This document shows, one piece after another, positions 517 to 61,100 of a stretch of DNA of 64,000 bases (positions within the stretch are counted from its first letter, which is position 1; each line of letters begins with the position of its first letter). The notes beneath the pieces were generated by a model. It made no database searches. It saw nothing but the letters and a program-made list of their open reading frames with translations, and was not told the origin of the DNA. The translations under genes were made by a program, and so were the position numbers. Where the stretch lies: contig NIVC01001087.1 in NCBI GenBank assembly GCA_002269645.1, positions 186,001-250,000 of the forward strand, given 5' to 3'. This DNA is from Macrostomum lignano. Its lineage: Eukaryota.

Positions 517-9524
<9,008 letters not shown>

Positions 9525-10144: not shown

Positions 10145-10332
10145 GAGCCTCTTCACGGCAATCGGTTCTAGTACCAGAATAAATTCGAGTTCTAGAACCA
10201 GAACCAGTGTGAAATGAGGAGCTTCGAACCCATTTTATGTTTGACAGTCTTTACAATTTAATTTTGTCGTTTTTTACTTTGTGTCCTCTTGGATACGACA
10301 AAAAAGGAATCTCTACCTATAAAAATCAAAAC

Positions 10333-10365
<33 letters not shown>

Positions 10366-12566: not shown

Positions 12567-12625
<59 letters not shown>

Positions 12626-27742: not shown

Positions 27743-29032
27743 TCACAGTACAAACAAAAGCACAATGAGAATTATGAGCACTAGCAGTAACACGCCAATC
27801 ACAGTCCACTGTCGCTTATCGTTAGACATGTGCAGCACTCGGGCCATCTTCTTCATCGTGGTGTCCAGCTTGCTTTCAGTGGTGTCCATCTCTCGCCCGA
27901 ATTCGTCCAATATCACTGCCTGCTCTTCCAGTTCGCTGTTCATGCGGTGCGAGATGTCTTTGAGTGCGCCGATGCCACCGCTGAGTCTAAGGTTTGGTGG
28001 TGAGGGGGATAAGGCGCCTTATTTTACATGCCAGATTGATTGACAGCTCGGCAACACTTCGATTGAATCCATGGCGGATGGTGGTCCAGCAACTGAGGAT
28101 CTGGGAGGCTGGCCCAGCAACTGGGGATCTGGGAGGCTGGCCCAGCAACTGGGGATCTGGGAGACTGGCCCAGCAACTGGGGATCTGGGAGGCTGGCCCA
28201 GCAACTGGAGATCTGGGAGGCTGGCCCAGCAACTGGGGATCTGGGAGGCTGGCCCAGCAACAGAGGATCTGGGAGTCTGGCCCAGCAACTGGGGATCTGG
28301 GAGGCTGGCCCAGCAACTGGGGATCTGGGAGGCTGGCCCAGCAACTGAGGATATGGGAGGCTGGCCCAGCAACTGAGGATCCGAAAGGGTGGGAGCTGAG
28401 CTTTAGAATGCGATGTCTGGTGCGGCAAAAACAATTATGTCTCACCTATCCAAAGTCTCATCCTGTTGCCTTAGCAGCAGCTGCTGAGCAGCCTGAGTCT
28501 CCTCTGCATAGTTTGGCAGGGCCTGCCTGCTAGAAGAGGCGCCACCACTGCCGCCGCCAGCTGCCCCCGGCTGCCGGACGGAGGTAGCAGTGGCCGGGGG
28601 AGTCACGGCTACCGGAGTGTTCGGCTCCAGCCGTTCGATCTTGGCCTTCATCTCTTGAGCTCGTTGACGAGTTTCGCTGACGAATCCGCGACGAGCGGCC
28701 ACTTCGGATTCGTCCAGACGGAATTTCCTCGGATTTCGTTCAACAATACCGATGGTCTCTTCGAGATCGTCCAGATCCCATTCGATGTTGCGTAGGGAGT
28801 TCTGCAACTCGCCAAGGCAATAGTCTAGCTCCTGCCTGCCCACAGGGTTGGAGGCCAGGGTTTTGTACTGGCTCATCAGGATGCTCCACCGATCGAAAAG
28901 TTTCCTGGCCGACTCGACGTTGCGTTCAACATCCGATTTAACGGCAAAGAATGGGTCCTCGATTGAACCGCCGCCGCCGCCTCCGCCAACAAGAGGCTGC
29001 TGCTGATTGGCTGCGGCTGCCGATGACGTCAT
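27743..29032 (-). CDS. STX6: Syntaxin-6 (Qc-SNARE), 2 exons, 276 aa
   Basis: Exon 1 28446-29032 (phase 2, donor gtgag) and exon 2 27743-27986 (ccttag acceptor). N-terminal motifs EDPFFAVK and LRNIEWDLDDLEETIGIVERNPRKF; SNARE motif QQDETLDRLSGGIGALKDISHRMNSELEEQAVILDEF; C-terminal transmembrane helix. Confidence 0.97.
28088..28375. repeat. 28-bp minisatellite family, array B (STX6 intron)
   Basis: Unit CTGGGAGGCTGGCCCAGCAACTG(A/G)GGAT, about 10 copies. Confidence 0.97.
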
Positions 29033-38200: not shown

Positions 38201-41200
38201 TCCCATCTCAGTTCCCTAATCCCATCTCAGTTCCCTAATCCCATCTTAGTTCTCTAATCCCATCTCGGCTAACTAATCCCATCTCAGTTCCCTAATCCCA
38301 TCTCGGGTCTTTAATCCCATCTCAGTTCTCTAATCCCATCTCAGTTCTCTGATCCCATCTCAGTTCTCTAATCCCATCTCAGTTCCCTAATCCCATCTTA
38401 GTTCTCTAATCCCATCTCGGCTGGCTAATCCCATCTCAGTTCTCTAACCCCATCTCAGTTCCCTAATCCCATCTCAGTTCCCTAATCCCATCTCAGTTCT
38501 CTGATCCTATCTCAGTTCTCTAATCCCATCTCAGTTCCCTAATCCCATCTCAGTTCTCTAATCCCATCTCAGTTCCCTAATCCCATCTCAGTTCTCTGAT
38601 CCCATCTAAGTTCTCTAATCCCATCTCAGTTCTCTAATCCCATCTCAGTTCCCTAATCCCATCTCAGTTCTCTAACCCCATCTCAGTTCTCTAATCCCAT
38701 CTCAGTTCTCTAATCCCATCTCAGTTCCCTAATCCCATCTCAGTTCTCTAATCCCATCTCAATTCCCTAATCCCATCTCAGTTCTCTAATCCCATCTCAG
38801 TTCTCTAATCCCATCTCAGTTCCCTAATCCCATCTCAGTTCTCTAATCCCATCTCAGTTCTCTAATCCCATTCTGGTTCTCTGAGATCTCACCTCCCCAT
38901 CTAAGCACAGCCCTAAACTATAAAATTCCCTAAAATTCCAGTCGCTCCAATCGTCCAAGCCTTCGCCGCCAGCCGGTTACCTCGGGCTCGACTTAGACGA
39001 TGGCGGCGGGGGCGGCCTTGGCAGCTACGGCCTGGGCATCTACGAGGGCCTGTCAGCCTCTCAGGCCGCCGCACCGACGTCCAACCGAGGCGTTCGATTC
39101 GTTGAACCTTCGCTGACGACGCAGAAAGAGGATCCGGTTGCGAGCGGCGGCGGCGGCGGCTTGCTGGCGCTGGGCACCAAGCAGGAGCGCAAGGCTCAGG
39201 CCGCGGCCAGGCAGAAAGCCGAGTACGCCAAGGAGTTGGAGCGCCAGATGGCCGAGAAGAGGGCCGCCGAGATTAAACGGAAACGGGAGCGGGAAGAATT
39301 CGAGCGGAAAAAGGAAGCAGAAATTGCCGCCTACGACCCGTTTGGTGGGTTGCTGTGCCCTCTGCTGTGCCCTCTGCTGTGCCCTCTGCTGTGCCCTCTG
39401 CTGCACTCTCTGCTGTGCCCTCTGCTGCACTCCCTGCTGTGCCCTCTGCTGCACCTCCTACTGCACCTTCTGCAACTTTTCCTGCACCCTCCTCACCCTC
39501 TGCTACACCCTCTCCTGCACCTTTTCCTGCACCCTCTGATGCACCTTTTCCTGCACCCTCCTCACCCTCTGCTACACCCTCTCCTGCACCTTTTCCTGCA
39601 CCCTCCTCACCCTCTGCTACACCCTCTCCTGCACCTTTTCCTGCACCCTCCTCACCCTCTGCTACACCCTCTCCTGCACCTTTTCCTGCACACTCCTCAC
39701 CCTCTCCTGCCCTCTCTGCTGCTCTCTACTCCACTATCTACACACTCTCACCCTCTCCATCACGCAGCACTGCTGCATCTCCCTAAACTCGCCAGCTATA
39801 AACGGCTAAAACATTTCCTCAGGCAAAGGCGGCGGCGGCGCGCCAATCAAGGACGCCCAGGGCAACACGCGAGCCAACCTGAAGCAGGTGATGCGCGAGA
39901 CAGACGACGACAGACTGTCCAACAGCGGTCACCGTGCTGCTGCTACTGGCGACGGCTACGACGATTTTCGAGGCCGAGGCGGCGACTTCTCATCGGGAGT
40001 CGCACCGGCAGGTTCAGCCGATCCAGACGACTGGATGCAGCATCTCGACGGATTAAAAGATTTGCAGACTAGATTATCTAAATCGTTTACCGACGATTTT
40101 GGAGGATTTTCCAATGCTACTGCTGCTAATGCTACTAATAGTAGGCAGCAGAAAGATGTTCAGCAACAAGAGAAGCAACAGCAGCAGCAGCCGCAGCACG
40201 CCAGAGGTGGTCACGGGATCTTTGGCAGAGGCCTCTCTGACGAACAGAAGCGTCAACGAGAGCGCTATCAGGAGGAGCTGAGGCAGCAGGTTGGGGCTGG
40301 AATGGATTTTCAAGATTCTAGAAAATATAGATTGGATGCTGAGGTTAAGACATTAGAGCATGGAATCAAGGGAGCTACCACGGGAGAATAAGATAAGAGA
40401 TTAAATACTGTGATGTGATCAAGAGATTATTATACTGGAATCATGAGATTAGACACTGAGATCAAGAGATTAGACACTGATATCAAGAGATTAGACACGG
40501 AGATCAAGAGGCTAGACACAGTGATCAAGAGATTAGACACTGAGATCAAGAGATTAGACACGGAGATCAAGAGGCTAGACACAGTGATCAAGAGATTAGA
40601 CGCTGAGATCAAGAGATTAGACGCTGAGATCAAGAGATTAGACACTGATATCAAGAGATTAGACACGGAGATCAAGAGGCTAGACACAGTGATCAAGAGA
40701 TTAGACACTGAGATCAAGAGATTAGACACGGAGATCAAGAGGCTAGACACAGTGATCAAGAGATTAGACACTGAGATCAAGAGATTAGACGCTGAGATCA
40801 AGAGATTAGACACTGATATCAAGAAATTAGACACGGAGATCAAGAGGCTAGACACAGTGATCAAGAGATTAGACACTGAGATCAAGAGATTAGACACGGA
40901 GATCAAGAGGCTAGACACAGTGATCAAGAGATTAGACACTGAGATCAAGAGATTAGACACGGAGATCAAGAGGCTAGACACAGTGATCAAGAGATTAGAC
41001 GCTGAGATCAAGAGATTAGACGCTGAGATCAAGAGATTAGACACTGATATCAAGAGATTAGACACGGAGATCAAGAGGCTAGACACAGTGATCAAGAGAT
41101 TAGACACTGAGATCAAGAGATTAGACACGGAGATCAAGAGGCTAGACACAGTGATCAAGAGATTAGACACTGAGATCAAGAGATTAGACACTGATATCAT

Positions 41201-42715
41201 GAGATTAGACACAGAGATCATGAGATTAAGGAAAGAGAGTAGACGGAAGAGACTGATCTAGGAACCGAGCCGCCATCTCAACTGTTATCTCTAAAAATCC
41301 CGCACTTCGCCAGGTGGAGGAGCAGCGCCGAGCCAAGGAGGCGGAGCGCAAGCGGCAGGCAGAGGAGGATCTCAAGGAGCAGCGCCGGGCAGAGGAGCAG
41401 CAGCGGCGCATGCAGGCCGAGGCGGAGGCGGAGCGCCGGCGCCAGGCTGAAAAAGAGGCAGCGGCCAGGCAGAGGAACGAGGAGCTGCGGCTGGCCGCCG
41501 AGGAGCAGCGAAAGCAGGCGGCTGCGGCGGCGGCGGCGGCGAGACGTCGACGGGATGTCGGTTCTCCGCCGGCGCAGCCTCCTGCGGCGCAGCATCATCA
41601 TCATCAGCAGCAGCAGCAGCGCTATTCGCCAAGAGCTGCGTCCCCGCCTGTAATTATGGCAGCAACAAAACTTAATTTAGTTCATTTTATTCTCCCCGCG
41701 CCCTATCTACTGTGGGTCTTGTGTGTGATGACTTCAACTAGTCTATCCGTATTGGTGAGATTTTTAATCCTGTCTACTCTTAAATGGGTGAGATTTCTAT
41801 TTATCTCTAATCTAAGGGTGAGATTTCTATCTACCTCTAATATATTAGGGGTGAGATTTTTATCTACCTCTAATATAAAGGGTGAGATTTCTATCTACCT
41901 CTAATATAAAGGGTGAGATTTCTATCTACCTCTAATATAAAGGGTGAGATTTCTATCTACCTCTAATATAAAGGGTGAGATTTCTATCTACCTCTAATAT
42001 AAAGGGGTGAGATATCTATCTATCTCAGATCTAAGGGTTGAGATTTTATCTACGAGCGTATCTCTAATCTAGGGGTAAAATTTCTATCTACCTCTAATCT
42101 ATAAGGGCGGCATTTTTATCTACCTTTAATCTATAAGGGGTGAGATTTGTATCTACCTCTAATCTAAGGGGTCAGATTTCTATCTACCTTTAATCTACAA
42201 GGGGTGAGATTTCTATCTACCTCTAATCTATTAGGGGTGAGATTTTTATCTACCTCTAATCTAAGGCGTCAGATTTCTATCTACCTCTAATCTAAGGAGT
42301 GAGATTTCTGCCTTCCTCTAATATAAGGGGTGAGATTTCTATCTATCTCTAATCTATAAGGGATGAGATTTCTATCTACCTCTAATCTATAAAGGGTGAG
42401 ATTTCTATCTACCTCTAATCTACAAGGGGTGAGATTTCTATCTACCTCTAATCTATAAAGGGTGAGATTTCTATCTACCTCTAATCTACAAGGGGTGAGA
42501 TTTCTATCTACCTCTAATCTATAAAGGGTGAGATTTCTATCTACCTCTAATCTACAAGGGGTGAGATTTCTATCTACCTCAAATCTACAAGGGTGAGATT
42601 TTATCTGTCTCTTATCTAAGGGGGTGATATTTTGTTCTGTTTGACTTTTCCGCAGGTACCAGCAATTCGAACTCAAATGGAGGTGCCGCCGAAACAGCAG
42701 AAGCCGCCCACGCCA

Positions 42716-42746
<31 letters not shown>

Positions 42747-44423
42747 ACCAGCAGCAACAGCAGCATCAGCATCAGTCACTTCAGCGCCAATCAACAGCCG
42801 CATCGGTCGCCTCAGCACCCGAGCCGGAATCCATTGAGCAGCTGGCCAGGTTGAGGAATCAGCTGCGCAGCGAGCGTCGACGAATCGAGGAAGCTCTGGA
42901 CGCTGGCGGAAGCGGCGCCGGAAGCGGAAGCGCCAACGGAAACGGAGCCGGAACCTACCGGGTTAGGGGCTCTTCCGCAGGAAATCAGGTAGATGGATAT
43001 GCGTGGGTTCAATAAAGGAATTGCGTTGATTTGTCGGTTTTTCATTGGTCAGCAGGGTGTCAGATGACTCGTTACCGTTTTGGGTCAGGTTGGATCGACC
43101 CATTAGGCATGGGTCGTTCTAGGTCAGCACATCAGGTTCCTGACCCATCTTGATGATTGGGTCAGCAAATCCCATCCCTGACCCATCTTGATGATTGAGT
43201 CAGCAAATCCCATCCCTGACCCATCTTGATGATTGAGTCAGCAAATCCCATCCCTGACCCATCTTGATGATTGGGTCAGCAAATCCCATCCCTGACCCAT
43301 CTTGATGATTGGATCAGCAAATCCCATCCCTGACCCATCTTGATGATTGAGTCAGCAAATCCCATCCCTGACCCATCTTGATGATTGAGTCAGCAAATCC
43401 CATCCCTGACCCATCTTGATGATTGGATCAGCAAATCCCATCCCTGACCCATCTTGATGATTGAGTCAGCAAATCTAGGTCATCATGATTGGGTCAGAAA
43501 ATCCCATCCCTGACCCATCTTGATGATTGAGTCAGCAAATCCCATCCCTGACCCATCTTGATGATTGAGTCAGCAAATCCCATCCCTGACCCATCTTGAT
43601 GATTGAGTCAGCAAATCCCATCCCTGACCCATCTTGATGATTGAGTCAGCAAATCCCATCCCTGACCCATCTTGATGATTGGGTCAGCAAATCCCATCCC
43701 TGACCCATCTTGATGATTGAGTCAGCAAATCCCATCCCTGACCCATCTTGATGATTGGGTCAGCAAATCCCATCCCTGACCCATCTTGATGATTGGGTCA
43801 GCAAATCCCATTCCTGATCCCAAATCCGATATCGTGACCAATTGGATCTGGATCGGGTCAGATCAAGATGCAGACCCGGCAACCAGCCCCTACCCCGCGA
43901 ATCCCACCAGGTGGACGTCTTCGACATGGCCCGCGACCGCCGCAAGCCGGTGGCCGCCAAGCGCAACATTGCAGCCTCCTCTGGCGGTGCGGCCGCGGCC
44001 GCGGCAGCTGCTGCTGGCAAAACGTCGAGCAACCGTCGCAACTTTGACGACATTGGCGGTCTGGCGCCGTCAGACCTGGGTCTGGGCAGCATCGGTGGTG
44101 GCGGCTACGGCGGCGAAACGTTCGAGTCGATGCAGCTCGACAGCGAGTCGGCTTTTGTCGACATCGACCAGCCGCTGTCGCCTAGCGGATTCGAGCAGCT
44201 TGGAGGCGGCGGCGGAGGCGGCGGCGGCGGCGGTGCCCTCAGCCCAACTGTCAGTCTGGACGTTGACCGAATCGACCGAGCGAACGAGGCCCGATTAAAG
44301 CGACTGCAACGACTGCAAGCCGATGCGGTGTCCTTAAATGACCCCGAGGAAGTGCTGAGCAGATTTATGTCGCGTCAGACTCGGCCAGTCAGCGGCCAGA
44401 CCGGGCATGAAGGCGACGATTAA
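35220..44423 (+). CDS. CSPP1: Centrosome and spindle pole-associated protein 1 (CSPP1)-like, 8 coding exons, about 1070 aa
   Basis: Exons: 35220-35373, 36021-36373 (alternative in-frame acceptor at 36039), 37247-37900, 38942-39344, 39823-40289, 41314-41649, 42656-42988, 43911-44423. All GT-AG and phase-consistent (3213 nt). Motifs recalled from CSPP1: N-terminal DIDQFIQEQKQRLAADR, RNAEYNEYLR, YDPFGKGGGGAPIKD, SPPVPA, VDVFDMAR, LDSESAFV, DVDRIDRANEARLKRL. Confidence 0.92.
35980..35993. promoter_or_regulatory. RFX X-box (GTTGCCATAGCAAC) in CSPP1 intron 1
   Basis: Exact match to the near-palindromic 14-bp RFX consensus, 27 nt upstream of the exon-2 acceptor, in a ciliary/centrosomal gene. Confidence 0.65.
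36555..37195. repeat. 16-bp minisatellite (TGTCTAGTTTATGAA(C/G)), about 40 copies, CSPP1 intron 2
   Basis: Direct inspection. Confidence 0.96.
37930..38870. repeat. 19-bp minisatellite (CTAATCCCATCTCAGTTC(C/T)), CSPP1 intron 3
   Basis: Direct inspection, about 49 copies. Confidence 0.96.
39350..39720. repeat. Compound 12-bp and ~45-bp CT-rich repeat, CSPP1 intron 4
   Basis: CTGTGCCCTCTG repeats grade into TTTTCCTGCACCCTCCTCACCCTCTGCTACACCCTCTCCTGCACC repeats. Confidence 0.9.
40395..41230. repeat. 21-bp minisatellite, CSPP1 intron 5; reads as a heptad ORF (IKRLDTE)n
   Basis: Unit ATCAAGAGATTAGACACTGAG, about 37 copies; open on both strands (40443..41261 + and 40430..41221 -). Confidence 0.96.
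41755..42620. repeat. About 30-33-bp minisatellite (GGGTGAGATTTCTATCTACCTCTAAT...), CSPP1 intron 6
   Basis: Direct inspection. Confidence 0.93.
43130..43830. repeat. 38-bp minisatellite, CSPP1 intron 7
   Basis: Unit GTCAGCAAATCCCATCCCTGACCCATCTTGATGATTG(A/G). Confidence 0.96.
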
Positions 44424-45204: not shown

Positions 45205-46368
45205 TTCAGTTGCTGAGCCAGCCTCCCAGATCCTCAGTTGCTGGGCCAGCCTCCCAAATCCTCAGTTGCTAGGCCAGCCTCCCAGATCCTCAGTTGCTGG
45301 GCCAGCCTCCCAGATCCTCAGTTGCTGGGCCAGCCTCCCAGATCCTCAGTTGCTGGGCCAGCCTCCCAGATCCTCAGTTGCTGGGCCAGCCTCCCAGATC
45401 CTCAGTTGCTGGGCCAGCCTCCCAGATCCTCAGTTGCTGGGTCAGCCTACCAGATCCTCAGTTGCTGGGCCAGCCTCCCAGATCCTCAGTTGCTGGGCCA
45501 GCCTCCCAAATCCCCAGTTGCTGGGCCAGCCTCTCAAATCCTCAGTTGCTGGGCTAGCCTCTCAGAGTGTCAGTTGCTGGGCCAGCCTCCCAGATCCCCA
45601 GTTGCTGGGCCAGCCTCCCAGATCCTCAGTTGCTGGGCCAGCCTCCCAGATCCTCAGTTGCTGGGCCAGCCTCCCAGATCCCCAGTTGCTGGGCCAGCCT
45701 CCCAGATCCCCAGTTGCTGGGCCAGCCTCCCAGATCCTCAGTTGCTGGGCCAGCCTCCCAGAGTGTCAGTTGCTGGGCCAGCCTCCCAGATCCTCAGTTG
45801 CTGGGCCAGCCTCCCAGATCCTCAGTTGCTGGGCCAGCCTCCCAGATCCTCAGTTGCTGGGCCAGCCTCCCAGATCCCCAGTTGCTAGGCCAGCCTCCCA
45901 GATCCCCAGTTGCTGGGCCAGCCTCCCAGATCCTCAGTTGCTGGGCCAGCCTCCCAGATTCTCAGTTGCTGGGCCAGCCCTCCCAGATCCTCAGTTGCTG
46001 GGCCAGCCTCCCAGATCCCCAGTTGCTGGGCCAGCCTCCCAGATCCCCAGTTGCTGGGCCAGCCTCCCAGATCCTCAGTTGCTGGGCCAGCCTCCCAGAT
46101 CCCCAGTTGCTGGGCCAGCCTCCCAGATCCTCAGTTGCTGGGCCAGCCTTCCAGATCCTCAGTTGCTGGGCTAGCCTCTCAGAGTGTCAGTTGCTGGGCC
46201 AGCCTCCCAGAGTGTCAGTTGCTGGGCCAGCCTCCCAGATCCTCAGTTGCTGGGCCAGCCTCCCAGATCCTCAGTTGCTGGGCCAGCCTCCCAGATCCTC
46301 AGTTGCTGGGCTAGCCTCTCAGAGTGTCAGTTGCTGGGCCAGCCTCCCAGATCCCCAGTTGCTGGGCC
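45205..46368. repeat. 28-bp minisatellite family, array C (opposite orientation on the + strand), about 41 copies
   Basis: Unit ATCCTCAGTTGCTGGGCCAGCCTCCCAG, the reverse complement of arrays A, B and D. Confidence 0.97.
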
Positions 46369-46481
46369 ACTTCTACCTGACTATCTGCAGAATTAATAAA
46401 TTATCTCCTTCCTAATAAAAACTGTTTTTATAAATGTATTCTACTAGCTAAGATAAAATGTTTAATGTGAATAACAGTCAC

Positions 46482-49400
46482 TCAGGCAGGACAGGTAAAT
46501 CTTCGCTTTCTAGCTCTTTTATTGTGGCCACCAGTCTGCCGCTGCGCCCTCTCAGGTGCGAGTCCTGCCCGAGCAGCGGTGCTGGACTTCCTTCGACACT
46601 GGCGCAGGTCGGTGACGACATTCTTGTCTGTCAACGTTGATTCCACCTCGACCTTGTTGGCCTCGAGTGGATCAGGTCTCGGGTTTGCGGTTCTGCAGGC
46701 GGCCTGCTGTCGGTAACTTGGCGAGCACTGCATCGACATCAGCCGCATGCAGTGTGACAGGCTGTCTTTGGAAGAATTTCTCAAAGGAGTAAAACGGTCT
46801 TGACTACTTCCGGAAGTTGGCTGCTGTTTCACTTCACTACCGGAAGTTGGTTTTGTTGAACCCGGCTGTGGAACCCTGCGGAATTAATGAACTATAAGTT
46901 AGTGTAGTTTATTCTGTGGTTAAACTATAGGATAGCCCATTCCAATGAAAACTATTCAAATGGTTCAAATTTAATCTATGGTCAAAACACCGTCTATTAT
47001 CTGTGTGGCACTCTGCAGGATCTCAAGGAATGGCGTTCCATGGTGCTGCAGCAGAATCGTGGATCCAGGCGTGCGGATGCTATCACGCGGTTGCTAAGAG
47101 TGCAGCCAAATTTGCTCACACACTTGCTCACGCTTCCTGCTTGATCGCTGTTTGGCCTGTGAAAATATCTCATTTGGTCTGACAGTTGCAAAATCTTTCG
47201 CTTCCTGGGTAACAGGATGCACCATTCTATCTAATATGGTTCTGAGTTTAAAGTCTGAATTCAACGCTCTCCCCAATACACGGTTTTGGCCATAGACAAT
47301 GGTCGAATAGTGGGTTGAATATGGTTGACCGTGTCTTTTGAATTCTCTACTTAAAATGCATTCTCTAACCTTGAAACATTACAACACACAATCATTCGCG
47401 TAAGGTGATCTATCGATATGTGAAGCTGGATTTTAGTTTTCGTTTTAATAATGAAATTATTGTCAACTTTTTTTAGTCTTGCACTCCTGTGCCTATCAAT
47501 TATTGGTAAGTTTGCTGTTTAATCTTAGCTTTTTTGAGAACATCTGATGAAAGCGTCCCTAGCAACCCATACAAACATTCAAGTTTCTGTAGCTTAAAGT
47601 AAACTAGCAAGTATTGTAATTCCTCAAGAGTCCCTAGCAGCCATTGAACACATTCAAAGCGTCCCTAGAAACCAATGCACGCCCTCAAAGCGTCTATAGC
47701 AACAATTCTATACATTCAAGTGACTAGTAGCAACCAACGGACACTCCAAAGCGTCCCTAGCAACCATACTCCACCGAAAAGCGTCCCTAGCAACCAATGG
47801 ATACTCTTAAAGCGTCCCTAGCTAGCAACCATACTCCACCGAAAAGCGTCCCTAGCAACCAATAGATACCCTTAAAGCATCCCTAGCAACCAATGGACAC
47901 CCTTTACGAGTCCTTAGCAACCATTCACCACGTTTAAAGCATCCCTAACAGCCAATGGACACCCTACCCTTAAACCGTCCCTAGCAACCAATTTATACAC
48001 TTAAAGCGTTCCTAACAACCAATGGACACCATTTCCTAAGCCTTAGCAACCATTCGCCACCTTTAAAGCATTCCTAACAACCAATGGTATGGACACCCTA
48101 CCCTAAAAGCGTCCCTAGCAACCAATAAACACCCCAATAAGCAACCAATGGAAACCCCAAAGCTTCCTAGAAACAATTAGAAACCCTCAAGTGACTCTAG
48201 CAACCAATTTGAACCTTCAAAGAGTCCCTAGCAACCCATAGATACAGGCTTCAAGCAACCTAAGCAACGTACCCTTAAAAATCCCAAGACATTATTCAAC
48301 ACTTTAAGAAGCGACACTGGCACTCGACTGCCACCACTACAACAACAAATTATTTGGACTTCGAGTGGACACAGGGCCGGCCATCTGCATTCCCGGACAC
48401 TCTTGCGTCCTGTTGATATATAAAACTGGACAGGTAAACATTTTAATTGGGCTCTGATTGCTTTAATCACACGTGTCTCTAGCCTGTTAGAAAAACTATT
48501 AATTATTCAATGACTGCCCGGCTCTGTTAAAGCTTATACGTGTAGATTAGTTTATAAAAATTTAAGCCCTTCAAGACTTCCTTAAAAATATTTTTAATGA
48601 CACCCCCATCAAATGACATGGCGCCCAATCAAGTGAAATGGCGCCTCCCCCATCAAATGAAATGGCGCCCCATATCAAATGAGATGGCGCCCCATATCAA
48701 ATGAGATGGCGCCCCATATCAAATGAGATGGCGCCCCATATCAAATGAGATGGCGCCCCATATCAAATGAGATGGCGCCCCATATAAAAAAAAATGGCGC
48801 CCCCATGAAATGAAATGGCGCCCCATATCAAAATAAAAAATGGCGCCCCCATCAAATGAAATGGCACCACCCCCATTAAATGAAATGGTGCCCCACATCA
48901 GATAAAAATGGCGCCCCCCATCAAATGAAAATGGCGTCCCCATCAAATTAAAATGGCGCCCCCATCAAATAAAAATGGCGCCCCCCATCAAATGAAATGG
49001 CGTCCCCCATCAAATGAAAATGGCGTCCCCATCAAATGAAAATGGCGCCCCCATCAAATGAAAATGGCGCCCCCCATCAAATGAAAATGGCGCCCCCACA
49101 ATCTAAGATTGACTTTTAAAAGTATTAAGAACTTATTTGGACAACACAGCTAAAAATCGGAGCCATAAACGCCAACAATTGCATACATATAGGAAGGCGG
49201 CATCTGCGGCACCTGCATATACGTGAAAGCCAAGCTAAAAGTTCTGGGCCTGGCCAACGACACCATCATCAAATGCGAAGAGTGCTCGGAAGATTTGTGC
49301 AATATAAAAAAGTTCACAAGCAGAACGGGTGCGTCAAGTGTGCTGACTCTTGCGGCCGGACTTGCGGTGCTGATAACAGTGCCTTGGCTCACGTGACCTA

Positions 49401-49549
49401 CACTGGGCTGTTTGATTTTTTTAGTTGACCCCGGAGGTCAATTATTTTCTTTAAATATACACGCGTGAACACAACATGCGGGACTCTGACGAAAAGTTGC
49501 TTTTCAATCGTACAGTTTTATATTAATTTTCAGACAGACAGACATCCAC

Positions 49550-49600
<51 letters not shown>

Positions 49601-49603
49601 GCC

Positions 49604-49636
<33 letters not shown>

Positions 49637-49787
49637 CACAAACAGACAGACAGCCAGACAGACAGACAGACAGACACACAGGCAGACAGACAGACAGCCA
49701 GACAGACAGACAGCCAGACAGACAGACAGCCAGACAGACAGACAGACACTAAGACACTAAGACAGACAGACAGACAGCCAGCCAGCC

Positions 49788-49844
<57 letters not shown>

Positions 49845-49867
49845 GCCAGACAGACAGACAGCCAGCC

Positions 49868-49940
<73 letters not shown>

Positions 49941-50668
49941 GCCAGACAGACTTACACCTCGGTGGCTCCCAGCGCAGACCGCACAGCCTCTCCGCTTGCC
50001 GCTATGCAGGCGGTCAGGCCAGCGGCATTCCTGGCCGCACCAATCGGCACCCCGAAGGCCGAGTGCCAGCCAAGCAGCTGCTGCACGCAGCGCTGACAGC
50101 CGGCAGCGGCGGCCAGGTGCAGGCAGGTGTCGCCGGCAGAGTCGGCAGCCAGGAGGTTCAGCCGCATCGGCACCGAGTCAGCTGCCAGCATCAAAGCCAA
50201 ATCCTCCGGCCGTCCGAGCGCGCAGGACCAAGCCAGGGGTGTCCGGCCGAACAGGGGATCCGGCCGGCCCAGCGGATCGGCTCCGTGATGGAGCAGCAGG
50301 CGCAGCAGCTTCAGCCGCTTTCGGGTCAGCTGAGCCACCTCAGATTCGCAGCCACCGTCGGGCAGAGTTGCCGCAATCAGCAGGGGTGTCAAGCCATCGA
50401 CAGGATCAACCAGGCTGTCAGTTGGTCGGCAGCCCATCGCGACAATCGAATGCCGACATGCTCGAAGGTCGCAAGCTCGAATCCCAGCTAGTAGGTCTCT
50501 AGCCAGATGAGAATTCGTAGCAGTGACGATGAAGAAGCGTCGGCCACTGTGGTTGCTAGGCAACGGGGCGAGCCAGGGTAGGCCTCGACCCGAGGAAACG
50601 GGAACTCTACCAGGAGACTCTGAGCCGCTGCGATGGCCAACAAAAGCAGCAGTCGCTGTGGGGTACAT
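46482..50668 (-). CDS. Ankyrin-repeat protein of unknown subfamily; 3' end uncertain
   Basis: Exon 1 49956-50668: ATG in caacaATG context, ankyrin repeats (GLTPLLIAA...LLLHHGADP; [12 protein letters not shown]; [21 protein letters not shown]) and a perfect GTAAGT donor (phase 2). Exon 2 47132-47349: ttttaag acceptor, in phase, GTGAGC donor. The terminal exon lies in 46482-46875, but its frame is ambiguous (stop at 46829 or at 46482). Confidence 0.7.
47451..49396 (+). CDS. Ly6/uPAR (three-finger, LU-domain)-type GPI-anchored protein, 3 exons, 127 aa, nested antisense in ankyrin-gene intron 1
   Basis: Exons 47451-47505 (signal peptide [18 protein letters not shown], donor gtaagt), 48309-48433 ([10 protein letters not shown]...C...C..., donor gtaaac) and 49193-49396 (GICGTC...[11 protein letters not shown], then ...[23 protein letters not shown]). 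Phases 1 and 0 are consistent. There are 8 Cys ending in the CN motif and a hydrophobic GPI-type tail. Absent from the ORF track. Confidence 0.88.
47550..48240. repeat. Degenerate ~33-bp array with a conserved CCTAGCAAC core, Ly6 intron 1
   Basis: About 20 units, with eight exact CCTAGCAAC copies and variable spacers. Confidence 0.85.
48600..49100. repeat. About 22-bp minisatellite (ATGGCGCCCCATATCAAATGAG), Ly6 intron 2
   Basis: Direct inspection. Confidence 0.92.
49531..49950. repeat. (GACA)n microsatellite abutting the ankyrin exon-1 donor
   Basis: Direct inspection. Confidence 0.96.
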
Positions 50669-51004
50669 TGTTGCTGGGATGCAATTGTGCACAGCAGGCA
50701 CCACCGCGAGAGGGGGCTGATGACGGACTGGTACTTATCTGTTTAAATACTTGCCTAGCAGTGCTTAAATGTGTTTGGCTTGAGCAAATAGGCACAGGCA
50801 ATGCGAGAGCGATAGGGCCATGCCAGCGTTCTGGACACGCCATGCCGTTTTTAGGCTATCGCGATGCTTTGTAAGCGTTTGTTTTCCACCTAGCTGAGGT
50901 AGAGGTCTTGCGACTCATTTGTCCTGCCGACTTGCTGAGATTAGAACTTGCCGGCGCTGCCGCGATAAAAGTAATCACCTTGAAATGTCTGCTTGTAAAA
51001 CCTG

Positions 51005-51240
51005 GAATCTGGGAGGCTGGCCCAGCAACTGAGGATCTGGAGGCTGGCCCAGCAACTGAGGATCTGGGAGGCTGGCCCAGCAACTGACACTCTGGGAGGC
51101 TGGCCCAGCAACTGACACTCTGGGAGGCTGGCCCAGCAACTGAGGATCTGGGAGGCTGGCCCAGCAACTGAGGATCGGGGAGGCTGGCCCAGCAACTGAG
51201 GATCTGGGAGGCTGGCCCAGCAACTGAGGATCTGGGAGTA
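51005..51240. repeat. 28-bp minisatellite family, array D (upstream of the ankyrin ATG)
   Basis: Same unit as arrays A and B, about 8 copies. On the minus strand it ends in an acceptor-like ...CCCAGATTCCAG| at 51002. Confidence 0.95.
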
Positions 51241-51341: not shown

Positions 51342-53274
51342 TCTCTACATATAAAAATCAAAACTCTGTGTGTGTGTGTGTCTGTCTGTGTGTGGACAAT
51401 TTTGATCACTATGGACTCCCAAACCGCTCAACCAAATGACACCAAATTTTACACCCACCCTAAACTCACTACGGAGAATGTCTTAGGCTACTTTTTAATT
51501 TCCTAAATTTGAGTCTTCCCACCTAAAAGTGCAAAAAACTGCTCAAAATGCGCGATTTTTTTACTAAAGCCTCCTTAGCGCCGCTCCACTTCTACCGATC
51601 CTCTTCAAATTTGACACAATCAATTTTCAACTATTTTGACACAATCGTGTAAAATTTCGAGTCTCAAAGTTAATCCTGAAAGCCGCTGTGCACTTTTAAA
51701 GTTAGGCTGTTTTTTTCAGCGAGGCAGCCACCCCAACCTCCGCCCGCCTGCCTCTCTTTCCCGATCTGGGCAAAGGGTGTGAATAGGTTTTAAAATGACT
51801 AACTTTCGGCTGCCATAAGTTTGCTCCACGTGAAGCGATTGACTTCTAACTTAACACAATTCTTCTTTGATTCATTCTCTGTCTAAATGTAAAGTTTCAA
51901 CTCTCTAACTCAATCAGAACAGAAACTGTAAGCATGTGAAGTTTGTCTGCTTTTTCTGTTGTTTGTGCCACTCACTCACTCATTCCCCCAGAGCCAGACG
52001 AAGGGTCAGGCGATAGGGCTCAATGTACATAGCGAGTGTACAGTGTTTTGGAATAACTTTTTAATAGCCTTCTCTGTACCCCCGCGCGTGGAGAGGCTAC
52101 ATTTAGCCATGACAGTTTAGTGAGAAATTCTAACCACTGTCCTCTGTATTGGCAAACTCTGCAGCAGTTTAACAGTGGATGGCAAATCGAGGGAATCCAG
52201 CATGGTTTGTAAAAGCGAAAGATTTATGAAAAGGCGATGCGATGCAATGCAATACAACCCTACTAAATTAGGCACACTATGGAAATTTTAGGTTTCTTTT
52301 AAAGGTACTGTGTAAATATTAAATGGCCTCCTAAGAAATGCGTATTTCCTTGGTTGTTAGACTGATGCAGACTGCAGTGGAGCTGAAGATACACAAATTC
52401 CTTTCAGGGCTGCAAATTGGCAAGAAAGATGACGTGATCAAAGCATGAGAACAACCATGAGAGTACTACGTCCCACAAACTGGCTTTCCAAGCAGGGATG
52501 GGCAGACTTTTACCTCAAAGACCAGATAAAGAACCAGCTCATAGCTGAGGGGCAGATGAAAGTGGAAAGAAGGAATAGACGATTCGAAGAGAGGAGAGGC
52601 GACAGAGGGGATAAAAGAAAAGATAAAAGATAATAGTAGAGATGAGGGGGTGAGGACGATGAGAGAGAGGGGGAGAAGAGGGGAGAGAGGAAAAGCGAGA
52701 GGAGAGAGGAGAGATGAGAGAGCAGAGAGCTGCAGATGAGAGGAGAGAGGAGACAGCAGAGAGGAGAGCAGAGAGGAAACAGGTGAAAGAAGAGATGAGA
52801 GTAAAGGGAAGAGAGAAGAGATAAAGATACATCTCTACATCTCTAAGGTTGTAGAGATGAGAGAGGTGGAAGGAGAGATGAGAAATGAGAGATAACGGAG
52901 AGAGGAGAGTGGAGTGAGAGAAGAGAGGGAGACAGAGTATAGACAAGGAAAGAGAAGAGAAAAGAAGAAAGGAGAAAGGAAAGTGAGGAGTCAAAAGAGG
53001 GGAAAGAAAAGAGTACAGATGAGAGAGGTGAGAGAACATATAAGACAGAGATGCCAGATTAAAGAGAGGGATGAGAGAGTAGAGACGAGAGTGAACAGAT
53101 AAAAGATGGGAGAGTAGAGAGAACAGAGGAGAGGTTACAGAGACGAGAGGAGAGAGGAGAGACAAGGTAGAGAAGTGAGTGAGGAGAGAGGAGAGGAAAG
53201 AGGAGAATTGAGAGGGGAGAGAGTAGAGAGAGGAGGAGAGATAAGAGAGAAAGACAGAGAGACAGAGAAAGAGA

Positions 53275-53353
<79 letters not shown>

Positions 53354-53363
53354 GAGAGAAAGA

Positions 53364-53441
<78 letters not shown>

Positions 53442-53460
53442 AGAGATAAGAGAGAAAGAC

Positions 53461-53517
<57 letters not shown>

Positions 53518-54235
53518 AGAGATAAGAGAGAAAGACAGAGAAGAGAGAGAGAGGGAGAGAGAGAGAGGGGGGAGCAGAGAGAAATGAGAAGAGATAAGAG
53601 AGAAAAGATAAAAGAAGAGAAAGGAAAGATAAGAGAGCAAAGACGAGAGAGAAAAGAGGTGAGGGAAGAGACGAGAGAAGAGGGGAGAGATGAGAGAGTA
53701 GAGGAGAGAGTTAAGAGAAGAGAGAAAAGGATAAAAAGGAGAAGGAAGATAAGAGAGAAGAGGGGGTGAGAGGAGAGAGGAGAGAGGAGAGGAGAGAGAA
53801 AAGAAGAGACAAGAGAGGAGATAAGAGAGATGAAAGAGAAGAGAGATGAGGGAAGATACGAGAGAAGAGGGGAGAGAGGAGAGACGAGAGACGAGAGACG
53901 AGGGACGAGAGAGATGAGAGGAAACAAAGAGAGTAAGAGACGATAGAAATTTTAAAGGATCCAAGGGACGTAGGGAGAGTCAGGGAGAGACCAGAGTTTA
54001 GCAATATATGTTTTAGAGTCAGACAGACATTGCCTGACATTCTGCGCAGTACCCCAGCCAACAATGTCTCAAACCCAAATTTTACACGAATGTGCTCCAT
54101 TTTATGTCTACCTCTATCCTACTAACTATTAACAAGTTTTTGTTTGTGTATGGCCTTAGATTTCAGAATACATGCAAAAGTAGTTCCGGGTATTGGAATT
54201 CCCCGGGTTCAAAATCCGCGGGTTTCAACAGCTTG
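51342..54235 (+). mobile_element. Non-autonomous Helitron-like element, copy 2 (about 2.9 kb)
   Basis: A|TCTCTACATATAAAAATC start, (TG)n/(TCTG), the same body and tail as copy 1, ending ...CCGCGGGTTTCAACAGCTTG. Confidence 0.8.
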
Positions 54236-57103
54236 TCTCTAACTATAAAAATCAAAACTCTGTGTGTGTGTGTGTGTGTCTGTGTGTGGACAATTTTGAT
54301 CGCTATGGACTCCCAAACCGCTCAACCAAATTACACCAAACTTTACACCCACCCTAAACTTACTACGGAGAATGTCTTAGGCTACCTTTTAATTTCCTAA
54401 ATTTGAGTCTTCCTACCTAAAAGTGCAAAAAACTGCTCAAAATGCGCAATTTTTTCACTAAATCCTCCATAGCGCCGCTCCACTTCTACCGATTCTCTTC
54501 AAATTTGACACAGACAATTTTCAACTATTTTGGCACAATCATGTAAAATATCGAGTCTTAAAGTTAATCCTGAACGGCGCTGTGCACTTTTAAAGTTTGG
54601 CTGTTTTTTTCAGCGAGGCAGCCACCCCAACCTCCGCCCGCCTGCCTCTCTTTCCCGATCTGGGCAAAGGGTGTGAGTAGGTTTTAAAATGCCTAACTTT
54701 CGGCTGCCATAAGTTTTCTCCACGTGAAGCGATTGACTTCAAATTTGACACAATTCTTTATTGACTCATTCTTTGCCTACATGTAAAGTCTCAACTCTGT
54801 ATCTCAATCAGGACAGAAACTGTAAGCATGTGAATTTTGTCTGATTTTTCTGTTGTTTGTGCCTCTCACTCACTCATTCCCCCAGCCCAGACGAAGGGTC
54901 AGGCGATAGGGCTCAATGTACTTAGCGAATGTACAGTGTTTTGGAATAACTTTTTAATAGCCTTCTCGGCACCCCGCGCGCGGAGAGGCGTGGAGAGGAG
55001 AGACAGTTTCAGCGAGAGATTCAAACCACTGTCCTCTGTATAGACAAGTCTGCAGCCGTTTAACAGTGGATGGCAAATCAAGGCGATGTGGGATGGTTTG
55101 TAAAAATAGCGAAAAATTAATGAATAACTGATTAGTAGTGATTACAATGCAATCCTACTAAATTAGTTACACCATGAAAATTTTAACATCAAGATTCGCA
55201 TAATGTAACTTTAAAATTTAAATGGCTCCTAAGAAATACGTATTTCCTTGGTTGCTAGACTGCTGCAGACTGTGGTGGTGGAGCTGGGCTGGAGGGAGAT
55301 ACACAAATTACTCTCAGGGCTGCTAATTGGCCAGAAATATGATGTGATTAAAGCATAACAACTATGAGAGTACTACGTTCCACAAACGCTTTCGAAGCGG
55401 GGATTGACAGACTTTAACCTCAAATGCCAGATAAAGAATCAAACTCATGGCTGATGAGATGAGAGTGAAAAGGAGAAGGAATAGACTATAAGAAGAGAGG
55501 AGAAGCGAGAGAACAGAGAAAAGATAGAAGACAAGAAGAGAGATGATGGGGTAAGGATAAGGAGTGAGCAGATAATATTGGAGTAAGAAGCGAGAGGAGG
55601 GGAGAGAGAAGAGAGAGGAAAGAGTAGAAGTGAGAAGAGGGAGAGAGAAGATGGGAGAGATGCGACAGGATCGATGACAGAGGAGAGCAGAGAAGAGTGA
55701 GAAGAGAGTAGAGATGAGAGATGAAGGAGGAGAGAGCAGAGTGCAGAAAGGCGAGAGAAGAGAATAGAGGGGAGAGAGTATAGAAGAGAGAAGAGAAGAG
55801 GAGTAAGGAAAGAGAGTAATCAGAGGAGGGTAAAGAGAAGAGTACACTGAAGATTGGAGAGTACAGATGGCAGAAAAGAGAGGGGATGAGAGTGAACACG
55901 ATATCTGAGAGGAGAGAGGAGAGAGGAGTCAGATGAGGGGAAAGAGAAGAGTACAGAGGAGAGAGGTGAGAACATACGAGTATACGAGAGTAAAGATGAC
56001 AGATGAGAGAGGGAAGATAAGACTGAGAGAGCAAAGACGAGAGTGAACACACGAGAGATGGGAGAGTAGAGAGAAAAGAGGATAGATAAGAAATAAGAGA
56101 TGAGAGATGAAAGGTGAGACAAAGGAAGAGAGAGACAGAGAAGTGAGTGAGGAAAGAGGAGGGGAGGGGAGAGAATCGAGAGGACAGGGGAAAGAGGGGA
56201 AAGGATGAGAGAGGGGTGAGGAGAGAGAGGGAGAGATAGAGGTAGAGAGCATGCAGAGAGAAATGAGAAGAGATAAGAGAGAAAAGATAAAAGAAGAGAA
56301 AGGAGAGATAGATAAGAGAGCAAAGACGAGAGAGGAGAGGTGAAGGAAGAGACGATAGAAGAGAGGAGAGAAAGACGAGAGAGTACAGAGTACAGAGGAG
56401 GGAGGAGAGGAGAAAGGAGAGAGGAGAAGTGTTCGGAGAGGGTAGAGTAAGGAGTGAGGAGAGGGGAGAGGGAAGAGAGAATAGAGAGTAGAGAGCAGAG
56501 AGAAGATAGTAGAGAGCAGAGAGAAGATAGTGCAGATCGAGCAGAGGGAAGATAGAGTAGAGAGCAGAGAGAAGAGAGAGTAGAGAGCAGAGAGAAAATA
56601 GAGTAGAGAGGAGAGAGTAGAGAGCAGAGAGAAGATAGAATAGAGAGCAGAGAGAAATGGGAAGAGATAAAACAGGAGAAAGGGAGAGATAAGAGAGCAG
56701 AGATGAGAGAGGAGAGGAGAGGAGAGAAAATAATAAGAGGGAATAGACGAGAGAAGAGGGGATAGAGGAGAGAGAGAAGAGACCATAGACCAGAGAAGAG
56801 AGAAAACAGAAGAGAAGGTAGAGATAGAAGTTTCTAAGGATCCAACTTCAAAGGGACACAAGGAGAGGCAGAGGCCATGAGTTTGCCTGACATTCTGTGC
56901 AGCACCCCAACCAACAATATTAATGTTTGCTTCAAATACTAATTGTACATGAATGTACTCTATTTTATGTTTAACTCTATCCTAAATTTCTAACTATTAA
57001 AAAGTTTTTGTTTAAGTATGGGCTCAGATTTCAGAATACATGCAAAAATAGTTCCGGGGGTTGGAATTCCCCGGGTTCAAATTCCGCGGGTTTCAACAGC
57101 TTG
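54236..57103 (+). mobile_element. Non-autonomous Helitron-like element, copy 3, directly head-to-tail after copy 2
   Basis: TCTCTAACTATAAAAATC starts immediately after the CTTG of copy 2; it ends ...CCGCGGGTTTCAACAGCTTG|T at 57103. More diverged than copies 1 and 2. Confidence 0.8.
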
Positions 57104-58151: not shown

Positions 58152-61100
58152 TCAGGCAGCCGGGCAGTCGGCAGAGGCGCCCGCCCCGATCATCTCCAGC
58201 ACGGATCGCAGGGTGGGCAGCGCAGCGGTGACGCTCAGGCAGTCGGCACCGGCACCAACAGACTTGGCCAAAGCCACGGGTTTCAGCCACTGCCTGGTGA
58301 CCAGAGCGAAAGCATCCGGCGTGCCGGCCAGCACGGGTTCGAGTTCCAGCGACTTGCCCGGAGGCGGCCGGCCACCAACGCCGATGTTGCTGGCCAACAG
58401 GAGGCCAACGGCGACGGCGAAAGCGGCGGGGCCGCTGCGATGCGACAGCGGCATAGCGTTGGTCAGATAGTACAGCAGGGTGAGCACGCGGCTTACCGCC
58501 TGCTCGCTCACCTGCGGTGCCGGCGGGGGGTTAGTGGAGGGAATGAATGCATGCCTACCCAGCATCCTACAGCATGCCTACCCAGCATCCTACAGCATGC
58601 CTACCCAGCATCCTACAGCATACAGCCCAACATCCTACAGCACACAGCCCAGAATCCTACAGCAACATCCTAAAGCACACAGCCCAGAATCCTACAGCAA
58701 CATCCTAAAGCACACAGCCCAGAATCCTACAGCAACATCCTACAGCACACAGCCCAGAATCCTACAGCAACATCCTACAGCACACAGCCCAGAATCCTAC
58801 AGCAACATCCTACAGCACACAGCCCAGCATCCTACAGCATACAGCCCAACATCCTACAGCACACAGCCCAGCATCCTACAGCATACAGCCCAACATCCTA
58901 CAGCACACAGCCCAGCATCCTACAGCATACAGCCCAACATCCTACAGCACACAGCCCAGAATCCTACAGCAACATCCTACAGCACACAGCCCAGAATCCT
59001 ACAGCAACATCCTACAGCACACAGCCCAGAATCCTACAGCAACATCCTACAGCACACAGCCCAGAATCCTACAGCAACATCCTACAGCACACAGCCCAGA
59101 ATCCTACAGCAACATCCTACAGCACACAGCCCAGAATCCTACAGCAACATCCTAAAGCACACAGCCCAGAATCCTACAGCAACATCCTACAGCACACAGC
59201 CCAGAATCCTACAGCAACATCCTACAGCACACAGCCCAGAATCCTACAGCAACATCCTACAGCACACAGCCCAGCATCCTACAGCATACAGCCCAACATC
59301 CTACAGCACACAGCCCAGCATCCTACAGCATACAGCCCAACATCCTACAGCACACAGCCCAGAATCCTACAGCAACATCCTACAGCACACAGCCCAGAAT
59401 CCTACAGCAACATCCTACAGCACACAGCCCAGAATCCTACAGCAACATCCTACAGCACACAGCCCAGAATCCTACAGCAACATCCTACAGCACACAGCCC
59501 AGAATCCTACAGCAACATCCTACAGCACACAGCCCAGAATCCTACAGCAACATCCTACAGCACACAGCCCAGAATCCTACAGCAACATCCTACAGCACAC
59601 AGCCCAGAATCCTACAGCAACATCCTACAGCACACAGCCCAGAATCCTACAGCAACATCCTACAGCACACAGCCCAGAATCCTACAGCAACATCCTACAG
59701 CACACAGCCCAGAATCCTACAGCAACATCCTACAGCACACAGCCCAGAATCCTACAGCAACATCCTACAGCACACAGCCCAGAATCCTACAGCAACATCC
59801 TACAGCACACAGCCCAGAATCGCACCTGATCAGGCCCTGGATTAGCCAGCCTGCCAGCTCGCATATCCCCTAGCAACTCGCTGAGCAGGTGATCCAATTC
59901 GTCCCTATACGAACGCAGCCGCAACGTTCTCAGCCGAATTCGAACGCCAAGAGAACACGAGCCGCCAACTTTGGCGTCCTCTGTCAGGTAGATGTAGGCG
60001 CCCTCGTGCCGCATTTGGTCGCGATATTTGGTGCTGGGCACCTGGGTGCCAACCACCAGGCCTCTGTCCTCGTCTCGATAGGTCCTGCGGCGCTTGGCGA
60101 TGGCCAGGACCTGCGAGTAGGTGGCGGGGGTTTTATAAAAGTCTACCAAAAAACCTACTTAAGAGTCTACCGAATAGCCTACTTTAGAGTCTACCGAATA
60201 GCCTACTTTAGAGTCTACCGAATAGCCTACTTTAGAGTCTACCGAATAGCCTACTTAAGAGTCTACCGAATAGCCTACTTTAGAGTCTACTGAATAGCCT
60301 ACTTTAGAGTCCACCGAATAGCCTAATTCAGAATAGCCAATCAGAGTTATTACCAAATAACCTATCAGACTCTACCAAAGAAGCTACCAGTTTACTAAAT
60401 AACTTACCACAGACAGACTCTACCAAAGATGCTACTAATCTACCAAATAACCTACCAGAGTCTACCAAATAGCCTACCAGAGTCTACCAAAAAGCCTATT
60501 AGTCTATCAGATAGCCTACCAGACTCTACTAAATAGCCTACCAGAGTCTACCAAACAGCCTACCAATCTATCAGATAGCCTATCAGAGTCTATCAAATAG
60601 CCTACCAGAGACAAGCGGACAACTCACCTGCCCCAGAGTTTGAGCAGTATCAAACTCGCGCTTCTCATCTTGACTACCAGCAGACCCCGGCCCCCTGCTG
60701 TGCTCAGTCATAGTCTTGGCCAACTGAAACACCAAATTAAAGTAGGCTTGCAGCGGCGGATTAGGCACGCCCCTGTGTACAATAGCGTGGTTAAACTGCA
60801 GATCCGGTGCATTGCTATTGGCTGTTGGCGATGGCTCAGATTTTGGCAGCAACGTGTGAACCAACTGTACAGGCTTGGTCAGGTCAGCCAGTTGAATGTA
60901 CTTTGCGGCCAAGTCAATTAAGGACAGCCAGCCAATATTATTGTGATTATAGCGATCGTGAGTTGCATTATACACCAGCTGACCGATATGTACAGCTGCC
61001 AGGCCAAGCGCAAACGTCACCCTCTCATTATTGACAGCTCCGTCTGTGTCTGTGCGAAATGACTGGCCAACTCGTTTAGCTAAGCAGATCAATTCTTGTT

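Follow-up and report, generated by a model that had tools for sequence, protein, structure and literature searches.

A gene of Macrostomum lignano for a probable divergent Ly6/uPAR-type protein and its opposite-strand ankyrin-repeat neighbour

The domain of the Ly6/uPAR (LU) family spans 60-90 residues with four or more cystines (PMC6600238, PMC3812095). Genes of the family have three exons, one for the signal peptide and two for the domain, with flanking introns of phase 1, a further intron inside the domain at the loop-2 tip, and the glycosylphosphatidylinositol (GPI) signal in exon 3; the ten cysteines of the domain are bonded 1-5, 2-3, 4-6, 7-8, and 9-10, the 2-3 pair is often lost, and an invariant Asn follows the tenth cysteine (PMC6600238, PMC4839075). 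The LU pattern most often erodes by losing the 2-3 disulfide of loop 1 while the other four pairs (1-5, 4-6, 7-8, and 9-10) are kept (PMC6600238). Among the mammalian proteins, the single-domain GPI-anchored members (LYNX1, CD59, and Ly6; SLURP1 is secreted) are encoded by three coding exons, with the same partition of signal peptide, domain, and GPI signal as in the gene described here. In the platyhelminths, the SmCD59-like/SmLy6 proteins of Schistosoma (with one member reported in Schmidtea) are small three-finger proteins with a signal peptide and a GPI signal; they are tegument-associated, are not complement inhibitors, are of unknown function, and have ten cysteines with flatworm-specific two-residue Cys2/3 and Cys4/5 spacing (PMC3812095). 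In the present study, we analyzed a stretch of 64,000 nucleotides from Macrostomum lignano, which belongs to the same phylum (NIVC01001087.1:186001-250000, assembly GCA_002269645.1; hereafter, the window). An earlier note, made from the letters alone, had placed a three-exon Ly6/uPAR-type gene of this window antisense within intron 1 of an ankyrin gene. All positions below are those of the window, and the features of the locus are listed in Table 1.

Positions 47451-49396 (+) are the M. lignano gene Mlig033933.g6, whose three coding exons specify a 127-amino-acid (aa) precursor. The gene is real and complete, and is already annotated in GenBank/UniProt under the same family name. The exon model of the earlier note, with its GT-AG borders, was exact: the three exons join into a 384-nt coding sequence ending with TGA at 49394-49396, the ATG-to-stop span of 1946 nt is exactly the annotated gene span, and over all 127 residues the product shows 100% identity to PAA72511.1 and PAA74788.1 (both recorded as 'hypothetical protein BOX15_Mlig033933g6/g2', i.e., Mlig033933.g6 and g2). 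The two donor sites read GTAAGT and GTAAAC, and the two acceptor sites end with tttaag and catatag. In UniRef (A0A267FLW7), the product is labeled 'UPAR/Ly6 domain-containing protein', a name that was used as a lead only. The GenBank annotation was made from RNA-seq StringTie/TACO assemblies, which were merged with a de novo transcriptome and filtered to coding 'core genes' (PMC5730564), and thus a spliced plus-strand transcript of the Ly6-like gene is indirectly supported. Between the stop codon and the downstream (GACA)n tract, AATAAA was absent, as the earlier note had remarked, and only AATATA was present, at 49454. In the literature search, no paper mentioned Mlig033933 and none connected Macrostomum with Ly6.

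The locus is present in two more copies, on NIVC01000922.1 and NIVC01000163.1, which fits the redundancy known for this assembly (PMC5730564). The Ly6-like protein encoded by the NIVC01000922.1 copy is identical to that of the window, and the NIVC01000163.1 copy encodes PAA89142.1, with three substitutions relative to the 127-aa product. Outside the repeats, the identity to the window is about 99.9% for the former and about 99% for the latter, and the two copies are therefore too close for the ratio of nonsynonymous to synonymous substitution rates to be used. The contig comparison also confirmed the source of the sequence, positions 37451-59396 being base-for-base identical to NIVC01001087.1:223451-245396. 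A second LU-like C-terminal motif was absent from every frame of the window; thus, the gene does not belong to an LU gene cluster there.

The signal-peptide-like N-terminus and the GPI-type tail described in the earlier note were confirmed as hydrophobic ends. The mean Kyte-Doolittle value is 2.41 for residues 3-18, and T-L-A and L occupy positions -3 to +1 of the likely signal-peptide cleavage site; at the C-terminus, the small residues G106-A107-S108 are followed by a hydrophobic tail (mean value, 1.74) that extends to the last residue. GPI proteins are marked by a signal peptide together with a C-terminal signal of small residues at omega, omega+1, and omega+2, a short spacer, and a hydrophobic tail up to the C-terminus, and the precursor is classed as one on the basis of this rule only. 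Translation likewise confirmed eight cysteines past the signal peptide (residues 26, 45, 51, 65, 68, 88, 91, and 96), which lie within a 71-residue span of a cysteine-rich domain of about 75 residues. N97 directly follows the last cysteine, C96, in a column that is invariant in the MAFFT alignment with mammalian LU proteins. The gene has the LU layout of three coding exons with a phase-1 intron 1, and intron 2, between Q60 and E61, falls in the middle of the 13-residue interval from C51 to C65, which is the presumed loop 2; Q60, the last residue of coding exon 2, lies in the predicted turn of that loop.

All comparators were endogenous mammalian LU proteins. The cysteine spacing was compared with that of 48 of these, the eight cysteines being numbered 1, 4, 5, 6, 7, 8, 9, and 10, i.e., with Cys2/3 taken as lost. 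The spacing in this protein (family range in parentheses) is 18 residues for Cys 1-4 (14-21), 5 for Cys 4-5 (5-6), 13 for Cys 5-6 (12-29), 2 for Cys 6-7 (3-5), 19 for Cys 7-8 (13-17), 2 for Cys 8-9 (0), and 4 for Cys 9-10 (4). Judging from the gene structure and the translated sequence, we consider it likely that the 127-aa product takes the LU fold and is GPI-anchored, i.e., that it is a divergent LU-type protein. It is recognizable as such by its gene architecture and cysteine framework, and not by profiles.

Several results weigh against this assignment. As for the spacing, the Cys 6-7 and Cys 7-8 values are 1-2 residues outside the mammalian range, and the CC of the CCxxxxCN motif is C88-E-E-C91 here (full motif, C88-E-E-C91-SEDL-C96-N97), Cys8 and Cys9 being adjacent in 48/48 family members. 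In Pfam, neither the precursor nor the mature domain matched UPAR_LY6 (PF00021), Toxin_TOLIP (PF00087), or QVR (PF17064) at E<=10, where the HMMER filters hide matches with a per-model P above about 1e-5. A phmmer search of 1.84 billion representatives found no relative outside M. lignano, and hence no comparative support; it returned only the product itself, the chimeric M. lignano model A0A1I8IX11 (see below), and a repetitive 1170-aa protein that matched the tail. In the hhalign comparison with the mammalian LU alignment, the probability was 12.7%, and only the signal peptide was aligned. The mean predicted local distance difference test score (pLDDT) of AlphaFold2 was 45.3 when only the sequence itself was supplied and 45.1 when the LU alignment was added, the latter run being partly circular, with C51 and C65 mis-paired by MAFFT. 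Foldseek found no match in the PDB for the alignment-free model.

The two AlphaFold2 runs, a look at the fold having been suggested in the earlier note, gave low-confidence models, of too poor a quality for use, with hairpins at residues 35-44 and 51-65 (strands 51-55 and 61-65), which are compatible with loops 1 and 2. A custom LU hidden Markov model (HMM), built from 62 of 103 mammalian LYNX1, SLURP1, and CD59 proteins, scored the full protein at 10.6 bits (E=1.6e-5 as a single test, Z=1) and the mature domain at 4.3 bits, a score that 21-33 of 2000 shuffled sequences also reached. Both scores depend on the C-terminal C..C.EDLCN motif and the tail, and the HMM takes EE as an insertion. Weak Pfam matches to zf-4CXXC_R1 and DUF4667 were below the cut-off and were rejected, and when the precursor was searched against PDB sequences, a thioredoxin-like match (E=0.32), put down to chance, was all that appeared. 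A global profile alignment with z=3.7 over shuffles and eight Cys-Cys matches was discounted, its path being very gappy and non-canonical. The Ly6/uPAR type claimed in the earlier note was thus supported by the architecture, the cysteine framework, the Asn, and the tail, and was not supported by Pfam, hhalign, AlphaFold, or the CC doublet.

If the resemblance to LU proteins were superficial, the product would be a secreted or membrane cysteine-rich protein of another or a new fold. This would agree with a domain that Pfam, hhalign, AlphaFold, and Foldseek all leave unrecognized, with the missing CC doublet, and with the orphan status of the product at the sequence level. However, LU hallmarks that are independent of each other coincide in this gene (the exon layout, the intron phase, the loop-2 intron, the L-x-C start of the mature protein, the cysteine spacing, the DLCN end, and the GPI-type tail), and a public source (UniRef) has given the product the UPAR/Ly6 name. 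We regard a different fold as rather unlikely.

With the mammalian LU proteins, the M. lignano gene has in common the phase-1 intron 1, the loop-2 intron, the L-x-C start, the DLCN end, and similar loop lengths. In contrast to their ten cysteines, the M. lignano product has eight, without the 2-3 pair and with C-E-E-C in place of CC; there is no significant profile similarity, and the identity is about 17-28% when the sequences are aligned with MAFFT, which pairs two of the cysteines wrongly. The two-residue spacings of the Schistosoma family are also absent from the product, and phmmer, with the same 1.84 billion representatives, gave no link between the two. The cysteine count fits the eight-cysteine LU scaffold of elapid short-chain three-finger toxins and of the BMPR2/ACVR2 ectodomains; unlike these toxins and receptors, the product has a GPI-type tail, and there is no sign of toxin function or of a venom context. 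In Drosophila, the single-LU proteins Sleepless/Quiver, Boudin, and Coiled are GPI-anchored and act as modulators of channels or receptors or in the building of septate junctions. These Drosophila Ly6 proteins offer a functional analogy only, of the kind to which the earlier note pointed, and Pfam QVR does not match the M. lignano product.

For the LU-type protein, the following course is proposed. The signal peptide would be cut after A23 to leave a mature protein that starts with LDC, the predicted disulfides are C26-C51, C45-C65, C68-C88, and C91-C96, and a GPI anchor would replace the C-terminal tail near G106. This would hold the domain of about 80 residues at the outer membrane leaflet of the cell, where, by analogy to other single-LU proteins, it may bind a receptor, a channel, or a junction component in cis or in trans. 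A flatworm LU-type protein can evade Pfam, profile-profile comparison, and AlphaFold and be recognizable by exon layout and cysteine framework only; therefore, the LU repertoires of flatworms may be under-counted.

Beyond the (GACA)n tract, which was found to adjoin an ankyrin open reading frame (ORF) as the earlier note had stated, this ORF is read on the minus strand (Table 1). It matched Pfam Ank (E=1.4e-10) and Ank_2 (9.8e-9), with Ank_4 and Ank_3 above the cut-offs, and 183 PDB ankyrin proteins at E<=0.01, among them tankyrase and designed ankyrin proteins. Without splicing, the ORF ends with GATEV followed by TAA at 49954-49952, and this TAA sits inside a donor-like GTAAGT (49955-49950, minus strand). 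The ORF is missing from the deposited annotation, no gene being annotated over it at any of the three paralogous loci. All three copies keep an intact frame of 238 codons counted from the ATG. No matching protein was found for it in a collection of 5.8 billion sequences; its best database match is a sea-urchin ankyrin protein with 28% identity over 34% of the query. Among the three copies, 4/4 substitutions in the ORF are nonsynonymous, where copies less than 1% apart and four substitutions have no power to show relaxed constraint. The GenBank 'core' genes omit transcripts that overlap repeat annotations (PMC5730564), and the absence of an ankyrin gene from GenBank is thus weakened as evidence.

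In the earlier note, this ORF was exon 1 of an ankyrin gene whose first intron held the Ly6-like gene. This arrangement is unproven: no host gene is annotated at the three loci, a stop lies in the donor, and the proposed exon 2 does not stand out. On present evidence, the Ly6-like gene and the ankyrin ORF are better described as convergent neighbors with the (GACA)n tract between them, and less well as nested genes.

Three readings of the ankyrin ORF were weighed. The ORF may be the terminal or sole coding exon of a gene that ends with the in-frame TAA and continues as a 3' untranslated region (UTR) into the (TGTC)n tract, so that the two genes lie tail to tail. The stop itself speaks for this, as do an end that, on our reading of the repeat, coincides with completion of the last ankyrin repeat and a AATATAAA-like signal on the minus strand just beyond the tract; moreover, no convincing second exon turned up. 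The perfect GTAAGT around the stop favors a donor instead, and we hold the tail-to-tail arrangement only tentatively.

It is also possible, if doubtful, that the ORF is unexpressed or decaying, with no host gene and no interplay. The pipeline that left it unannotated at three loci is transcript-based and was reported to be 98% BUSCO-complete (PMC5730564), every difference among the copies alters an amino acid, the closest database relative is distant as given above, and the ORF is flanked by satellite and dispersed repeats. However, the frame is intact in 3/3 copies, and the few substitutions at this degree of divergence say little on constraint.

For nesting, the ankyrin ORF would be exon 1 of an expressed minus-strand gene that splices from 49956 to 47349, or, for example, to 46875, across the Ly6-like gene. 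The GTAAGT lies exactly at the end of the ORF, and by our own estimate a TAA is flanked by G and GT by chance at about 1/64. Real exon ends typically have donor hexamers that include a stop in frame. The stop within the donor thus favors splicing if the ORF is expressed, and equally allows a plain C-terminus. Open frames follow the AGs at both acceptors (85 codons behind 47349 and 131 codons behind 46875), and the repeat-overlap filter of GenBank makes the missing annotation no proof of absence (PMC5730564).

Against this, the host is unannotated at all three loci, its protein is not in the 5.8-billion collection, and the proposed exon 2 is not distinctive. It makes up 85 codons of a 94-codon stop-to-stop frame (47378-47094). 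When joined to the 49956 donor, 10/362 AG sites, including that at 47349, give at least 85 codons; the acceptor at 46875 is pyrimidine-richer (ttccgcag), i.e., it combines a longer frame with a better acceptor, and other alternatives of at least 85 codons are frames antisense to Ly6 exon 3 (at 49402-49407). In 46400-49955, 11 minus-strand stop-to-stop frames have at least 60 codons. The GC content at third codon positions (GC3) is 0.42 in the proposed exon vs. 0.66 in the ankyrin ORF. Pfam found no domain in the proposed exon and nothing relevant in the 116-aa minus-strand ORF at 46482-46832. Compared with the NIVC01000163.1 copy, the proposed exon differs at 10 of its 256 nt, 6 of the substitutions being nonsynonymous and 4 synonymous, and it lies in a divergence hot spot (46953-47244) with 18 substitutions in 292 nt, the remainder differing by about 1% (Fisher p=1e-9); the all-nonsynonymous changes of the ankyrin ORF also speak against a host gene. 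Nesting is unproven, a donor-like hexamer and one of many open frames being its whole support in the sequence, and we consider it unlikely.

The hot spot spans the 3' two-thirds of the proposed exon and adjoins 553 nt (46400-46952) that have no substitutions. Gene conversion from another copy or relaxed constraint is a possible cause.

The ATG of the Ly6-like gene is 102 nt from the proposed acceptor, in agreement with the distance of about 100 nt in the earlier note, but the promoter overlap with host exon 2 and the transcriptional interference suggested there fall with the nesting. Genes within introns on the opposite strand are common in animals. If the ankyrin ORF splices across it, the Ly6-like gene would be an ordinary opposite-strand nested gene of the kind known in metazoans, and the nesting would be unremarkable. 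That an unannotated ankyrin gene splices from 49956 to 47349 or beyond, with a lineage-restricted LU gene that Pfam does not see, and in which C-x2-C stands for the CC motif, antisense in its first intron and mutually exclusive expression of the two, seems quite improbable.

Table 1. Features of the locus of the Ly6-like gene and the ankyrin-repeat ORF, in window positions
Feature	Positions	Strand	Description
Proposed ankyrin 'exon 2'	47094..47349	-	85-codon open frame after AG; unverified
Coding exon 1, Ly6-like gene	47451..47505	+	55 nt; signal peptide (18 codons + 1 nt); followed by phase-1 intron with donor GTAAGT
Intron 1, Ly6-like gene	47506..48308	+	GT...AG; phase 1; mostly degenerate 31-bp minisatellite
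Coding exon 2, Ly6-like gene	48309..48433	+	125 nt; end of signal peptide and first half of domain (C26, C45, C51); ends with Q60
Intron 2, Ly6-like gene	48434..49192	+	phase 0; mostly 22-bp minisatellite
Coding exon 3, Ly6-like gene	49193..49396	+	204 nt; second half of domain (C65, C68, C88, C91, C96-N97), G106-A107-S108, hydrophobic tail
Probable 3' UTR, Ly6-like gene	49397..49530	+	no AATAAA
(GACA)n / (TGTC)n microsatellite	49531..49951		about 105 units; separates the two reading frames (Tandem Repeats Finder)
Unannotated ankyrin-repeat ORF	49952..50704	-	first ATG at 50668; Pfam ANK repeats

Two older UniProt models of the locus, A0A1I8IX11 (260 aa, 'Variant-specific surface protein' in UniRef) and A0A1I8JCC5 (558 aa, 'HMA domain-containing protein'), fuse a plus-strand fragment at about 46458-46640 to Ly6 exon 3 (49193-49393), leave out the stop codon together with the (GACA)n tract, and continue into the ankyrin region (49978-50491), which they translate from the wrong strand (+). 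These are chimeric predictions and are evidence for neither gene.

Acceptor-like sequences occur close to both ATGs, attttag 14 nt upstream of that of the Ly6-like gene (47430-47436) and tcccag 5 nt upstream of that of the ankyrin ORF (50673-50683). Both would be suitable for trans-splicing of a spliced leader, a process that concerns about 39% of the genes of M. lignano (PMC5730564). Tandem Repeats Finder placed the 31-bp minisatellite of intron 1 at 47622-48160 (also with 62-, 65-, and 129-bp periods) and the 22-bp minisatellite of intron 2, with about 22 copies, at 48603-49096. The copy number of these intron minisatellites varies among the three paralogous loci.

The upstream neighbor, at 37451-44423 (+), is an annotated gene that ends at 44423 and encodes a 1067-aa protein with no Pfam match; it is common to all three loci. 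The downstream neighbor, from 58152 to 59396 and beyond (-), is an annotated TPR-repeat gene (928 aa) with its 3' end at 58152. Rfam and tRNA scans of the whole window gave no matches.

A 28-bp minisatellite, TCAGTTGCTGGGCCAGCCTCCCAGATCC, has 68 matches in the window, where 0 are expected, and forms arrays at 7452-7927 (-), 28097-28376 (-), 45206-46369 (+), and 51005-51238 (-); the array yields long spurious ORFs. The arrays at 45206-46369 and 51005-51238 lie on either side of the Ly6-like gene and the ankyrin ORF, in inverted orientation. A foldback-type transposon formed by these inverted arrays was rejected as the main interpretation, the arrays being at four sites and the flanking genes common to the three loci. 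The window also has three copies (10309-13333, 51342-53964, and 54236-56845) of a low-complexity, purine-rich element; each copy is about 2.6-3 kb long, and their mutual identity is 77-82%. The NIVC01000922.1 locus aligns (98.9%) only to the copy that starts at 54236, and the copy at 51.3-54.2 kb thus seems to be an addition to this scaffold, by insertion or by duplication.

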